Shown here piece by piece: positions 11,410 through 43,701 of a stretch of 64,000 nucleotides of DNA (positions are counted from its first letter, which is position 1; the number at the start of each line of letters is the position of its first letter). The DNA is taken from the NCBI GenBank assembly GCA_964057225.1, contig OZ059895.1, forward strand, positions 17,980,001 through 18,044,000, written 5' to 3'. The stretch is from Auanema rhodensis (lineage: Eukaryota > Animalia > Nematoda). Under the pieces are notes generated by a model. That model was given only the letters and a program-made list of their open reading frames with translations. It searched no databases and was not told the origin of the DNA. The position numbers and the translations under genes were made by a program.

Positions 11410-11515
11410 TTACGAATTGGAAGAGCACACCAGATTCGGAGAACCCATGCTTTGCAGTACCCGATCAACCCACATAAGTGGTCCATTCAATTGTACATCA
11501 ATCCAACAAGGAGTA
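11410..11515 (-). pseudogene. Orphan copy of the R-Smad terminal exon, first of 15 (others at 13413, 15404, 17407, 19410, 21380, 23350, 25353, 27356, 29248, 31140, 33098, 35056, 37014 and 38972; each 106 nt)
   Basis: Reverse complement is cttttgattcag|T-ACT-CCT-TGT-TGG..., reading [34 protein letters not shown]. It matches 41185-41290 except for ATG>GTG (M>V). Confidence 0.95.
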
Positions 11516-12138
11516 CTGAATCAAAAGAAGACAAGCAAATAAGCTTTTATCAGTGTTGAATGCTGAAAACACTTGCAATATTGCTAAGAAGTTTTTTGTC
11601 CTTATCAATATCAGAAATAGTATCAGTACTGAGGTTCTTGTAAAGGAAAACATACTGAAAATGCTCTTAGCTACAAAACAGGATAAATAACAATTTTTAA
11701 TAGCTATACGTTAAAATAAACTTATGTTTTTTGAAGAAATATCTTTAAAAACTTTGTAAAGTTAAGTTATGTATGATTGAATACGTGAATCATTCATAAT
11801 GTACTCATTATCAGTTTCAAAAAATTGTCACTTTGTTTGGATTCTTAAAGGATTAGAGTGTTTCTAAGCAGACACGCAAACACAATATGAACACATCACG
11901 AACATGACCTGATAGCAACAGGGCATTTCTTTCGGTCTTGAATTTAATTAGTAAAACTTTTCCTTTATCATTGCGGCATCGAAAACAAAAATCTTCAAAT
12001 TGAATATTATAGTATTTATTACCTCATTTAGAAAGTACAACATAAACTCATTAAAGGTTGAGTATGATAAGAACAGTGGTATATAATGAGTGAAGAGCTT
12101 TACTCCAGTACTCTTCTTACGGAAGGCAGTAATTCAGA

Positions 12139-12978
12139 ATGCATCGTTCGATGTGGACCGTTCTCTTTGCCGTGCTTATGGCTCAGGTATACTTTCAGTA
12201 ACTTTAAATGAATTCTGAAATATTTTAGACTAGAGTAAGCGCTCGCTATGTCTCCACACAACCTGAAGCCAAATTTTTGAGCATGGCACTTCCTGAAGGA
12301 GGTGTAGTCAGCGGAGCTGCTGGAGCCGCAGGAGGATTGGTTAACGGAGCTGCTGGAGCTGCAGGAGGAATTGTCAACGGAGCTGCTGGTGCCGCAGGAG
12401 GAATCGTTCGTGGAGCACACGGAGCTGCCACAGGATTGGTTAACGGAGCTGCTGGAGCTGCAGGAGGATTGGTTAACGGAGCTGCTCAAGCTGCAGGAGG
12501 AATTGTCAACGGAGCTGCTGGAGCTGCAGGAGGAATCGTTCGTGGAGCACACGGAGCTGCCACAGGATTAGTTAACGGAGCTAGTATTGGATTAGGATCT
12601 ATTATTGGAGGATTGGCCCACGCTGCCAACGGAATTGTCAACGGAGCTGCAGGAGCATTGAATGGTGGATATTACGGAGGACCTGGAGTTATATATGGTG
12701 GATCATACGGAGTACCTGGAGTTATATATGGTGGATCATACGGAGTACCTGGAGTTATATATGGTGGATCATACGGAGTACCTGGAAGCGTGTATGGAGG
12801 ATCATACGGAGGATCATACGGAGTACCTGGAGGTATGTATGGTGGATCATACGGAGGATCTGGAGGTATGTATGGTGGATCATACGGAGGCCCTGGAGGC
12901 ATGTATGGTGGATCATACGGAGGATCTGGATCATACACATATCCACCATCTTACGGACCATACCTTCAAATTAAGTAA
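12139..12978 (+). CDS. D1: secreted Gly/Ala + Gly/Tyr repeat protein (265 aa)
   Basis: 48-nt signal-peptide exon, 42-nt intron, exon 2 in frame with ORF 12277-12978. Confidence 0.9.
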
Positions 12979-39700: not shown

Positions 39701-40750
39701 ATGCATCGTTCGATGTGGACCGTTCTCTTTGCCGTGCTTATGGCTCAGGTATACTTTCAGTAACTTTAAATGAATTCTGAAATATTTTAGACTAGAGTAA
39801 GCGCTCGCTATGTCTCCACACAGCCTGAAGCCAAATTTTTGAGCATGGCACTTCCTGAAGGAGGTGTAGTCAGCGGAGCTGCTGGAGCCGCAGGAGGATT
39901 GGTTAACGGAGCTGCTGGAGCTGCAGGAGGAATTGTCAACGGAGCTGCTGGTGCCGCAGGAGGAATCGTTCGTGGAGCACACGGAGCTGCCACAGGATTG
40001 GTTAACGGAGCTGCTGGAGCTGCAGGAGGATTGGTTAACGGAGCTGCTCAAGCTGCAGGAGGAATTGTCAACGGAGCTGCTGGAGCTGCAGGAGGAATCG
40101 TTCGTGGAGCACACGGAGCTGCCACAGGATTAGTTAACGGAGCTAGTATTGGATTAGGATCTATTATTGGAGGATTGGCCCACGCTGCCAACGGAATTGT
40201 CAACGGAGCTGCAGGAGCATTGAATGGTGGATATTACGGAGGACCTGGAGTTATATATGGTGGATCATACGGAGTACCTGGAGTTATATATGGTGGATCA
40301 TACGGAGTACCTGGAGTTATATATGGTGGATCATACGGAGTACCTGGAAGCGTGTATGGAGGATCATACGGAGGATCATACGGAGTACCTGGAGGTATGT
40401 ATGGTGGATCATACGGAGGATCTGGAAGTATGTATGGTGGATCATACGGAGGATCTGGAAGTATGTATGGTGGATCATACGGAGTACCTGGAAGCGTGTA
40501 TGGAGGATCATACGGAGGATCATACGGAGTACCTGGAGGTATGTATGGTGGATCATACGGAGGATCTGGAAGTATGTATGGTGGATCATACGGAGGATCT
40601 GGAAGTATGTATGGTGGATCATACGGAGGATCTGGAAGTATGTATGGTGGATCATACGGAGGCCCTGGAGGTATGTATGGTGGATCATACGGAGGATCTG
40701 GATCATACGCATATCCACCATCTTACGGACCATGCCTTCAAATTAAGTAA
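39701..40750 (+). CDS. D15 terminal array copy (335 aa, expanded Gly/Tyr block)
   Basis: Same structure; longest Tyr block; Y>C near the C-terminus (PCLQIK). Confidence 0.9.
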
Positions 40751-41184
40751 AAAATATCTTTTTAAAAAGAATGAGCAATCTTTAACAATGATAAAATCTG
40801 CCAAAAGATGTATAACAACTAAGATTTCATTTTTGTCTCATGCTTGTACTTAGGCAATTATGTTTAAATAAACGCTCATATCCAATCATCTTATTATATC
40901 TAAAACCAAAACAATCGAAATTAGAGATTAAATTACAGTTATACATGTTAATCGGTATTACTCATGATTAGAAACCTTAACAATAAAAAGGTTTATGAAT
41001 ATATATAAAGTACATATTGATATATAACGAGATTAATTTAATTACCTGTAAAACCATGAGGTATATTGCAAACGTAAATAAGAGATATCATAATTAGGAA
41101 ATTTTCAAACGGTTCTAAAGAATAGAATAATAATAGTGACCTTAATAACTATAAATAAATTTTAAATCCTATTTTTGTGCCAAG

Positions 41185-43701
41185 TTACGAATTGGAAGAG
41201 CACATCAGATTCGGAGAACCCATGCTTTGCAGTACCCGATCAACCCACATAAGTGGTCCATTCAATTGTACATCAATCCAACAAGGAGTACTGAATCAAA
41301 AGCCTCATTGTATAACCAATAGGGGACAAGTGACTTACCAATTGACGGTCTGGTAATGATAATCAGCTCCCCAACCTTTTACAAAAGATATACGGATAGT
41401 GCACACGCGGCTTAAAGTATATACAGCATCAAACCCTTTGTGGATTGTTTCAGCTAGTTGAGCAGCAAATTCAATATTACTAAATATTTGTAAACTACAC
41501 TTCGATGGTACCTAAAAACAAATTATGAGTTGATACTCTACGGTAAAGCGTACTTTGCAAACTGTACTGGGATGCCAACCATGTCTTTGATTGCAGTTAG
41601 GAGACTGCACAAAAACGGCACGATCAGAAAGGCACTCAAGAAAAACCTGAACACAACTTTGAAGAAAGAAAAATGAAAATTGGAAGATAAAGGCTGACCT
41701 CTCCGTTTATATAATAAATTCGGGCTCCTTTACCAATTAGCTTTCTTGTTTCGAGAATTGATGTATCTCGCTCAACGCTGTCAAGATAGCCTAAGCAAAA
41801 TCTGAAAGAACAATACACTGATCATCAGTTATAAATGTGTGTGAACACCTATCATTTGTATGAGGCTGCATAAAGCCATCGATGAGAATATAGCGAGATT
41901 TTGCAGAAAAGGAAGATCCGACTCTCTTGTGTTTCTCATAATAAGCAATACTAATCCACGATTCTGGTTCAGTATATTCAACAATTTCATTGATCACTAA
42001 AACATTAAAATATTTCATTTTCATATAATATCATACGTGAACGTCCTGGCTCCGATAAAATGCTTAACATATTCGAACAATTTTCGTTATTTGACTGAAA
42101 AATAAGAACTAACAAAAAATTAAATACTAATGCTAACCTGTGACAGATGTATACTATGAGCTTCATTGCAATTTTCCTGTTCTTGCAATTCCATGTTTCC
42201 ATTGTTCCGATTTTCTTCAATCTCCGCAGATCTGAAGAGGCTATATATGGAATATAAATATAAAGCATTCTTACTCATGTTCCATATTATAGTCGATTTC
42301 CACATTAGAAGGATGATTATCAACATTACCAGTACTATTTTGACTTGACATCATTCCTTGATAAGGAAATTCATTACTCCGCTGTGAATATGGCATATAT
42401 ACATCAGAAATGTCAGATACAGGAGCATACTGCTCCTCATTGTGTACCAATGGAACATTCTGCCCAGAATCGTTGAAGGGTTTTCCGTAACATTGACTAT
42501 TTTGCATACTAGTATTGTCTGATTTCTGTCCAGAATACATATCAGGATTTTCATGCATCAAGCAATTTGCTGGAATACCATCGTTGGTGTAATTCCAATC
42601 ATTTGTCAAGCACTGGGCATTCTGATAACTAGCACAGACTTGATTAGTGTTGTTCGGAGCAACATGGTTTTCTTTAGAATTTTGATAATTAATATATCCA
42701 TTGGGTATACTGCTAGACGCAGGATAAGCTGAATATGAAGAAGAACTCTGACAAGAGTTTTGTTGGCAATCATCAGGGAGCACGTGAGGAGAAACAGATA
42801 TATCATTCGCGTTATGATATTTTTCGTTTACCGAATTACAAACCCCATCCCTACATTGATTAGCCTGATTACCAGGAAGTGCCTAAAACAAAGAAAGAAA
42901 AATAGAAAAAAATTACTTAAAACTTACAAAAGGAGTTGAACTTTCGGATCTTAATTCATCAACATTTATACAAACATTAGGTGCAGCCTTTAAATATATA
43001 TTACCAACAATGCGAAAAATAAAATGTACCGTGTCATCAGATCTTATATAGAACATAGATTTTGAAGGAACGGAGTATGCCTTACTTCGGTCAACCAAAA
43101 TAGGTGGAACACCTACGTATTAGAGAAATTGAACAATATTCAATAATCAAAACTTACGCGGTGGATTGGATGGCATTGATATTTCTACATGCATAGGATT
43201 AACACAAACAGACTGTCCTCCCATTGGATACAAACAGTTCGGAGTATTTCGAAGCTCCATTTGGTGCCTGCATGAATTTAAGTTTGTTTATAAATATGAA
43301 CATCTGTTTACCTGACCCAGGGGAATCTCCACATCCGAATATACTGCATAAGAATCCTCTCATTAAACTTCTCCTGCTTTGCATCTCTATAAATTGATAA
43401 ATTTTATTAATTATTGTAAATAAATCTTACTTTTCTATTGGACAACATTGAGAATTAATATTCTCATTTATTAAAGCAGATTCAATAATTATTAAAAACT
43501 TAGTTTTTTTGATTAGTTTGGCTAAAACTTTAATTTTTTCAAAAGCCCAGTTTGGATCATTCTAAAAATAACGATAAACTTATTCTAAAAAAGATTTTAT
43601 TTTTTTCTTACATTTCCTTCATGTGCTATAACTTCTTTACGTACTAGCTCAGCCAATTTTGTTACAGTTTTCATAGAGCTAGGTTCAAAAATAGATCTCA
43701 T
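41185..43701 (-). CDS. daf-8: Receptor-regulated Smad (divergent MH1, MH2, C-terminal SSNS), daf-8-like
   Basis: Spliced MH1: MRSIFEPSS...[16 protein letters not shown]...NSQCCPIEK...[22 protein letters not shown]...VCVNPMH...PPILV. MH2: [66 protein letters not shown]...CSSNS*. The symbol rests on recalled C. elegans synteny (daf-8, ran-4 and paxt-1 are all on cosmid R05D11). The R-Smad call is firm; the symbol is less so. Confidence 0.88.

Follow-up and report, generated by a model that had tools for sequence, protein, structure and literature searches.

The window analysed here, a 64,000-nt stretch of the Auanema rhodensis genome, holds a tandem array of head-to-tail units (u1 to u16, the copy number being that of the assembly), which runs at its right-hand end into a gene for a daf-8-like R-Smad, itself adjoined by an NTF2 (ran-4-like) gene in divergent orientation (Table 1). 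The cargo of the array is a complete gene which converges on the Smad gene and encodes a putative secreted Gly/Ala- and Gly/Tyr-rich protein, and this payload gene at the core of the unit is the main point overlooked by an earlier sequence-only reading of this DNA.

Table 1. Coordinates of the array, its genes and the copies of the Smad terminal exon in the window
Feature	Position	Strand	Basis
Tandem array, 16 head-to-tail units (u1-u16)	9334..41302	.	breakpoints and within-window Blast
u1 payload gene, diverged paralogue, 331 aa	9929..10966	+	unit comparison and RNA contig
Intact payload equivalents, 228-265 aa	starts 12139, 14142, 16133, 18136, 20139, 22109, 24079	+	
Further intact payload equivalents, 228-265 aa	starts 26082, 28085, 29977, 31869, 33827, 35785, 37743	+	
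u16 payload gene, two exons, 42-nt intron, 335 aa	39701..40750	+	ORF/gene model
Orphan 1 (u1), 12 nt intron + 106-nt exon/stop, Val allele	11410..11527	-	seed search and copy comparison
Orphan 2	13413..13530	-	seed search and copy comparison
Orphan 3	15404..15521	-	seed search and copy comparison
Orphan 4	17407..17524	-	seed search and copy comparison
Orphan 5	19410..19527	-	seed search and copy comparison
Orphan 6	21380..21497	-	seed search and copy comparison
Orphan 7	23350..23467	-	seed search and copy comparison
Orphan 8	25353..25470	-	seed search and copy comparison
Orphan 9	27356..27473	-	seed search and copy comparison
Orphan 10	29248..29365	-	seed search and copy comparison
Orphan 11	31140..31257	-	seed search and copy comparison
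Orphan 12	33098..33215	-	seed search and copy comparison
Orphan 13	35056..35173	-	seed search and copy comparison
Orphan 14	37014..37131	-	seed search and copy comparison
Orphan 15, closest to true exon	38972..39089	-	seed search and copy comparison
Junction filler AAGAC, 5 nt	39090..39094	.	junction comparison
daf-8-like R-Smad gene, 14 exons, 634 aa	40937..43720	-	RNA contig joints and gene model
True Smad terminal exon, 106 nt including TAA	41185..41290	-	RNA joint 41339/41290 in four runs and translation
Sole true-versus-orphan difference, A (Met) vs G (Val)	41205	-	copy comparison; RNA contigs carry A
NTF2 (ran-4-like) gene, first exon region, divergent from Smad	44117..44338	+	Pfam NTF2, E = 1.3e-9

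RNA evidence came from contigs assembled from four runs of one study, which are unstranded and may miss rare variants. In each of the four the Smad gene (ATG at 43674) is expressed with normal splicing, one contig per run crossing its 13 introns, each of 40–52 nt, and the last of these is a 48-nt GT..AG intron that joins the donor at 41339, as predicted earlier, to 41290. Exons 10–13 give collinear matches to PF03166 (MH2; positions 1–162 of 174, E-values from 4e-7 to 7e-11), and the terminal exon, which encodes the end of the MH2 domain and the C-terminal tail, aligns to residues 165–197 of the Smad3 MH2 domain (E = 1e-11). The full MH2 domain is 50–60% identical to Smad2/3-type proteins, while for the MH1 domain only one exon matches PF03165 (positions 71–101), with 16.5 bits (E = 0.01), which falls short of the 25-bit cut-off in what was a less sensitive exon-by-exon scan. 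The C-terminus reads CSSNS and thus contains the canonical SSXS receptor-phosphorylation motif (as defined in PMC7119156), phosphorylation itself being predicted, and with the MH2 matches this bears out the proposed daf-8-like Smad with an SSNS tail as an R-Smad of the Smad2/3/DAF-8 type.

The top two matches are the Smads of Heterorhabditis bacteriophora and Haemonchus placei, the latter ending in SSFT as does Hco-DAF-8. On the other side of the gene, a high-depth RNA contig begins at 44096 for the NTF2 gene; in C. elegans daf-8 (R05D11.1) and ran-4 (R05D11.3) share one cosmid, R05D11, and the NTF2 neighbour can be taken as a marker of daf-8 synteny. The Auanema gene resembles the nematode DAF-8 R-Smads (Cel-DAF-8, Hco-DAF-8) in its Smad2/3-type MH2 domain, its best named relatives and its ran-4-like neighbour, whereas it differs from them in having a tail of the canonical SSXS form rather than the SSRT of C. 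elegans or the SSFT of Haemonchus (PMC7119156), and in being long (634 aa), its linker being rich in Ser, Asn and Gln and its MH1 domain barely detectable.

The units of the array are about 2 kb in size (1.9–2.2 kb), measuring, from u1 to u16, 2194, 2003, 1991, 2003, 2003, 1970, 1970, 2003, 2003, 1892, 1892, four times 1958, and 2213 nt. Internal unit ends lie at 11527, 13530, 15521, 17524, 19527, 21497, 23467, 25470, 27473, 29365, 31257, 33215, 35173, 37131 and 39089, and the right-hand breakpoint at 41302 falls within the last Smad intron, where the amplified unit had already been placed to end. At each of the 15 junctions the same 5-nt filler is present, which is missing in both parental flanks, and this argues for a single founding duplication that was expanded later by unequal exchange. 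Head-to-tail units, one common junction and a breakpoint inside the adjoining gene are the hallmarks of a partial duplicate carried in a tandem array. Units fall in ordered blocks of distinct length variants in which neighbours are identical, and from unit lengths and unit comparison the array is young and length-variable, in agreement with its earlier description as rapidly changing.

Every unit contains an intact two-exon payload ORF of 228–335 aa with a common hydrophobic N-terminus, in u16 MHRSMWTVLFAVLMAQ, which by eye is a putative signal peptide. In the u16 product this is followed by GAAGAAGGxVN repeats and then by YGGSYG(G/V)PG repeats; no Pfam match, homologue or Atlas relative was found for the protein. 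The u1 payload gene is transcribed, as a contig from runs X1 and X2 shows six differences from u16, which is the number expected for u1, two of them being listed by position. Since the unit is built around this complete convergent gene, the presence of a Smad exon in it is explained by the position of the breakpoint.

An exact seed search of the window with the Smad acceptor and exon start gave 16 matches, all on the minus strand, of which one is the true exon and 15 are orphans. In each copy the 106-nt terminal exon is preceded by 12 nt of intron and followed by the 3' UTR, so that the claim of 15 extra intact copies, all downstream of the Smad gene and in its orientation, proved correct. Homology between true and orphan copies ends after exactly those 12 nt (CTTTTGATTCAG), beyond which the true copy runs into the real intron and the orphans run into a unit junction, and a Blast search of 38800–42500 against the window found nothing in the array from beyond 41302 (exons 10–13). 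The stop codon of the first orphan ends at 11410, where the sequence-only reading began its interval, and the identical 3' UTR extends below this point. As in other partial duplicates, the parent promoter and upstream exons are missing: the minus-strand sequence ahead of each orphan is the payload promoter of the next unit in antisense, with the orphan lying about 610 nt upstream of that promoter and divergent from it, as well as downstream of the gene of the previous unit.

Over 40751–41302 (552 nt) the 16 copies have a single variable site, at which the minus strand reads A in the true copy and G in 15/15 orphans, and copies this alike cannot have arisen by chance. This is the substitution from PNLMCSSNS to PNLVCSSNS that had been noted for all orphans, although it is located at 41205 and not, one base off, at 41204. 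Outside the payload it is the only difference among units 2–16, and it lies inside the exon and is non-synonymous, which for a random site has a chance of about 6–8% and is not significant. Among units 2–16 the promoter, exon 1, intron, intergenic region, UTR and intron stub, 1147 nt in all, did not vary at any site, whereas the 106-nt Smad exon varied at one and the Gly-rich exon 2 at 28, with in-frame indels in addition; with such uniform identity the Smad exon is no better conserved than its non-coding flanks. Pairwise, units 2–16 differ by 0–19 substitutions and u1 differs from the others by 148–261, all to the left of its tail: divergence is about 3.5% over its first 800 nt (upstream region, exon 1 and intron) and far higher in its coding repeats, while its tail is identical to those of other units. 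Together with the identical neighbouring blocks this indicates concerted evolution, in which interior units are near-identical and edge units diverged. The Met/Val difference would have persisted because it is only 97 nt from the edge of homology, in the part of the terminal repeat least reachable by this process.

With concerted evolution clearly active, the main role of the orphans could be that of a store of sequence from which conversion or unequal crossover rewrites the true exon, resulting in unusual evolution of the Smad tail. Apart from the coding repeats units 2–16 do not differ, u1 has had its tail overwritten, and a crossover that contracts the array would put Val in the Smad if it fell in the 97 nt right of 41205. 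The earlier suggestion of the orphans as 3'-end donors thus holds insofar as transfer is possible, by a tract that takes in the final 97 nt of homology, but with one differing site there is almost nothing to donate beyond a Met to Val change at a variable position (by alignment Arg in Smad2/3, and Pro, His or Ala in other Smads), and this difference has outlived the homogenisation that erased all others. We therefore consider it very unlikely that donation is their main role. It is likewise very unlikely that the copy number or unit order is an artefact of over-expansion or mis-joining of a shorter array: near-identical 2-kb repeats are difficult to assemble, but ordered length-variant blocks with all payload ORFs in frame are not expected from collapse or random mis-joining, two versions of the tail are seen independently in RNA (that of u16 in the Smad 3' UTR, a u1-type one in the payload contig), and the junction and orphan exon would exist even with a wrong copy number.

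The orphans had been proposed as possible alternative last exons, in favour of which they retain acceptor, frame, stop, UTR and the correct orientation, and their acceptor has a richer pyrimidine tract than the true one. Smad exon 13 would then be spliced past the true acceptor and poly(A) site to an orphan 2.2–30 kb downstream, giving an isoform with a Val tail. The assembled RNA does not bear this out: in 4/4 runs the Smad contigs use the 48-nt intron and the proximal exon, match the last exon without mismatch, carry A (Met) at 41205, and end at 40937–41027, about 160–250 nt past the stop and short of the next unit. No contig with G (Val) was found in the four runs, in which differences were listed from 1 in 100, so that for RNA spliced from 41339 the proposed check of the allele gave A only at the level of assembled contigs, and the only joint from 41339 in these contigs, from which rare forms may escape, goes to 41290, with no loose ends and no other joints. 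An intron of at least 2.2 kb running antisense through a convergent gene would also be exceptional next to Smad introns of 40–52 nt, and its product would differ by one conservative residue, which makes this use of the orphans highly improbable. The arrangement of several acceptor-exon-UTR modules below one donor in the same orientation is that of alternative terminal exons, where 3' exon choice is coupled to polyadenylation, but in such systems transcripts join the common donor to each acceptor, whereas no RNA contig here uses the distal modules, which stem from recent duplication of the neighbouring gene and encode a near-identical peptide.

A second possible activity is antisense, as each payload gene points at a copy of the Smad 3' end, the exon of which starts 435 nt past the payload stop. 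Read-through from the 15–16 Gly-rich promoters across these copies would produce dsRNA or endo-siRNAs lowering Smad in trans. The 3' ends of the payload and Smad mRNAs are at most about 70 nt apart, and use of a second plus-strand AATAAA, at 40982, would make them overlap; on the other hand, payload contigs stop at 40852–40867, just short of the plus-strand AATAAA at 40867, and no contig spans 40867 to 40937 (40868–40936 being uncovered, in contigs that are unstranded). The RNA moreover shows the 3' end of the u1 paralogue only, no contig being assignable to units 2–16, and Smad expression and splicing are normal in all runs, and we regard a role as antisense source as very unlikely. A similarly small probability is given to the wider idea that the orphan 3' ends are active, either through antisense dsRNA or 22G-type RNAs tuning Smad by array copy number, or through sense outron-like RNAs trans-spliced at the orphan acceptor; the latter, arising from bidirectional promoter activity, would have their 3' end at the Smad poly(A) site and include a 21-codon ORF encoding the receptor-phosphorylation tail. 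If so, a dauer/TGF-beta signalling gene would be coupled to a fast-changing array, and natural copy-number variation would modulate this signalling if array copy number influenced Smad, but the present evidence does not point there.

The reading that we find clearly the most probable is that the 15 extra Smad exons are fragments that travelled as passengers in a tandem segmental duplication, the cargo of which is the convergent Gly-rich gene. In the founding duplication, position 41302 in the last Smad intron would have become linked, through the 5-nt filler, to the equivalent of 9334, about 610 nt ahead of the ATG of the Gly-rich gene. Gene conversion and unequal exchange between sister chromatids or homologues probably then raised the number of units to 16 and made them alike; this order of events and mode of expansion are what we infer from the array. 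Every orphan possesses acceptor, coding sequence, stop and 3' UTR while missing a promoter, upstream exons and a donor feeding it. Because the Smad transcript takes the first acceptor, which lies 48 nt beyond the donor, and its 3' end falls short of the following unit, the orphans add nothing to the Smad product and are most likely inert. As counter-points to inertness, minor or condition-specific isoforms or short orphan transcripts could escape the contigs, the orphan acceptor has the better pyrimidine tract, and antisense or bidirectional transcription across the orphans is conceivable from their position between payload genes.

The locus is thus a real but ordinary partial gene duplicate. 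Partial duplicates constitute about 21–38% of young C. elegans duplicates (PMC3449122), and those formed by tandem segmental duplication in C. elegans and Drosophila (Katju 2012 review, PMC3449122) likewise have a breakpoint within the gene, are without promoter and 5' exons, and are tandem, direct in orientation and recent in origin, while here the fragment is exactly one complete terminal exon with acceptor and UTR, amplified 15-fold by riding on an expanded unit. With concerted tandem gene arrays (CUP1-type amplifications, cited in PMC3449122) the locus shares the head-to-tail arrangement, the identical junction, near-100% interior identity, diverged edges (the left of u1 and the right-edge SNP of u16) and identical length-variant blocks, but its cargo is an orphan low-complexity putative secreted protein of no known family, and the array borders on a signalling gene and takes in part of it. 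It offers a clean, datable example of array formation, in which a single filler junction was followed by expansion and concerted evolution left its effects at the edges, and shows how an array drags along a piece of the adjoining gene. For annotation, the 15 Smad-like exon matches found here are not genes.

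An exact search of the window for the splice acceptor and start of the terminal exon of the daf-8-like Smad gene gave 16 matches, every one on the minus strand, with spacings of 2003, 1991, 2003, 2003, 1970, 1970, 2003, 2003, 1892, 1892, 1958 (four times) and 2213 nt. These are the true exon, 106 nt with its TAA, and 15 orphan copies, one in each of units u1 to u15 of the tandem array, the copy number being that of the assembly rather than of DNA reads. The final 12 nt of the intron (CTTTTGATTCAG) are common to all 16; beyond them, in the upstream direction, the true copy runs on into a real 48-nt intron and the orphans into junction sequence. 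In an alignment of 620 nt taken downstream from every junction, the stretch from 41302 down to 40751 contained a single column that differed among the 16 copies, where the true copy has A and every orphan has G (ATG versus GTG, Met/Val). The copies described in the sequence-only reading were thus borne out, except that the SNP which it placed at 41204 lies one base further, at 41205. The feature is real and its mechanism is ordinary: part of a gene was duplicated and then multiplied as a hitch-hiker in a tandem array of recent origin. Partial copies are common among the young gene duplicates of nematodes (PMC3449122). The Smad fragment is the minor part of each array unit.

On the plus strand every junction reads ...CTGAATCAAAAG / AAGAC / AAGCAAATAAGC..., where the Smad intron stub forms the left side, the right side starts exactly where the homology of u1 to the other units begins (9334), and the 5-nt AAGAC is absent from both parental flanks. 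Since the junction with its filler is identical in 15/15 cases, the sequences indicate that the array probably arose by one founding non-homologous tandem duplication, followed by expansion through homologous unequal exchange. Any two of units 2-16 are separated by 0-19 substitutions, with identical blocks of neighbouring units (u4 = u5, u6 = u7, and u11-u14). As the counts of variable sites in the table below make clear, the orphan exon has been kept no better than the non-coding sequence on either side of it. Selection acting on this exon was ruled out, the non-coding flanks being just as invariant, and its intactness instead reflects youth and homogenisation. Apart from the SNP at 41205, variation in units 2-16 is confined to exon 2 of the payload gene (the gene for a Gly/Ala- and Gly/Tyr-rich secreted-type protein carried by each unit), with 28 variable sites and in-frame changes in repeat number versus one variable site in 1253 nt elsewhere; this contrast could stem from mutation driven by the repeats or from diversifying selection acting on a secreted protein of low complexity.

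Features of the array and its surroundings, with variable sites among units 2-16
Feature	Window position	Strand	Length compared	Variable sites
Gly-rich ORFs (examples)	1719-2654, 6101-7345, 7433-8269	minus		
Array, u1-u16	9334-41302			
Payload gene of u1	9929-10966	plus		
Payload exon 2	39791-40750 (u16)	plus	639 ungapped columns	28, plus indels
Payload RNA contig	40703-40867			
Smad gene	40937-43720	minus		
Smad exon (terminal)	41185-41290 (true copy)	minus	106 nt	1
Smad linker exon	42275-42882	minus		
NTF2 (ran-4-like) gene	44096-44338			
Junction, promoter, exon 1, intron, intergenic, Smad 3' UTR, intron stub			1147 nt	0

In its first 800 nt, which hold the upstream region, exon 1 and the intron, unit u1 diverges from the others by approximately 3.5%, and in the coding repeats by far more. 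Its last ~650 nt, including the orphan exon, are identical to those of the other units, and such a diverged left side with an identical tail is the signature left when conversion or crossover overwrites a tail. The SNP separating the true exon from the orphans is located 97 nt inside the right-hand limit of homology, and its survival needs no special explanation, as the right edge of the terminal unit is the part least accessible to homogenisation. A contraction crossover or conversion tract spanning these 97 nt right of 41205 would place Val in the real Smad, and because the interval makes up about 5% of the unit length, only a small fraction of the exchanges involving the terminal unit should be transfers of this kind. 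The earlier proposal that the orphans act as donors rewriting the Smad 3' end is sound in mechanism, although what would be delivered is one conservative change at a position which is variable among Smads (Smad2/3 have Arg there, and other Smads have Pro, His or Ala). No close orthologue which could polarise Met versus Val was found in an exhaustive HMMER search with Smad exon 13, where the top identity was 70% (Heterorhabditis) in a library that does not include the A. rhodensis protein itself.

Each of four RNA runs from one study contained one Smad contig of 2.1-2.2 kb, whose 13 GT..AG joints, each spanning 40-52 nt, define a gene of 14 exons with its ATG at 43674 and a 634-aa product; introns are short throughout (13/13). 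The sequence-only reading had also suggested that the orphans serve as alternative last exons. All four contigs splice 41339 to 41290 and match the last exon without a mismatch (A, Met). Their ends fall at 40937-41027, some 160-250 nt beyond the stop codon and well short of the next unit. An orphan transcript, if assembled, would be visible, as it would map here with a single mismatch, yet the four runs, with differences listed down to 1 in 100, gave no contig with G at 41205, and no loose ends were reported. The assembled contigs, which are strandless and from which rare variants are dropped, thus argue against alternative last-exon use and go part of the way towards refuting the sequence-only reading by the test that it set itself, although rare forms could escape them.

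The orphans could also be transcribed via antisense read-through or bidirectional promoter activity, since they lie between payload genes: the gene upstream points at the orphan, and the next payload ATG is ~610 nt away. The contigs lend this idea no support, as none covers 40867-40937. The sole payload RNA on this stretch is a contig of 215-230 nt in two of the runs (X1 and X2), just beyond the ends of which is a plus-strand AATAAA at 40867. It has six mismatches, as many as there are u1-specific differences, with the two listed by position being among them, and it therefore shows only the u1 paralogue; taking this contig as a sign of interior-unit expression was rejected on the same count, and no contig on the payload 3'-end stretch was attributable to units 2-16. 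The u1 gene, the only payload copy with its 3' end in the RNA contigs, is a clearly diverged paralogue of 331 aa with His-rich GAHGAA repeats.

All Smad searches were done exon by exon. Exons 10-13 gave a collinear match to positions 1-162 of 174 of the Pfam MH2 domain, while MH1 was only weakly detectable. The last exon aligned from end to end with the final 33 residues of the human Smad3/Smad2 MH2 (E = 1e-11), with Smad1 poorer. The best named relatives are the Heterorhabditis bacteriophora and Haemonchus placei Smads, the latter with the SSFT terminus that has been reported for Hco-DAF-8; the Smad described here ends in a canonical SSXS (SSNS), whereas SSRT or SSFT is the tail of the DAF-8 proteins described from nematodes (PMC7119156). 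Pfam identified the divergent upstream neighbour as an NTF2 gene, and in C. elegans daf-8 is R05D11.1 and ran-4 (NTF2) is R05D11.3. Based on the Smad2/3-type MH2 match, the best relatives and this neighbour, 'daf-8-like' seems a reasonable name. The two ATG regions are ~440 nt apart, and the NTF2 contig has about 8-fold the depth of the Smad contig. The linker exon encodes a 202-aa Ser/Asn/Gln-rich stretch for which no relatives were detected when used as query, and a literature search for daf-8 and tandem duplication returned no papers.

Each unit contains a complete two-exon payload gene on the plus strand, convergent with the Smad gene, with the stop codon at 40750 being 435 nt from that of Smad. 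Exon 1 encodes MHRSMWTVLFAVLMAQ, a putative signal peptide read by eye, and is followed by a 42-nt GT..AG intron and by an exon 2 with 11-residue GAAGAAGGxVN repeats, a short unique core, 11-residue YGGSYG(G/V)PG repeats and a ...YPPSYGPYLQIK end. The ORFs are intact in 16/16 units (228-335 aa), with length differences in frame. The protein had no match in Pfam and no relative in the ESM Atlas (scores ≤0.64), a word-indexed search gave three weak low-complexity matches without a self-match, none of them usable, and exact-protein look-ups in other strains and assemblies (P0004 and P0005, two payload ORFs, one Smad exon ORF) found none on record. Neither the Rfam scan nor the tRNA scan of the window returned anything, and so the unit carries no RNA gene.

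The array adjoins a cluster of other Gly-rich ORFs on the minus strand (window 1-9000), for which there was no Pfam match. Two of these ORFs (1719-2654 and 6101-7345) resemble paralogues of each other, and two repeat-rich stretches (3212-4640 and 7966-8947) form a second such pair, which suggests a segmental duplication of ~4.4 kb.
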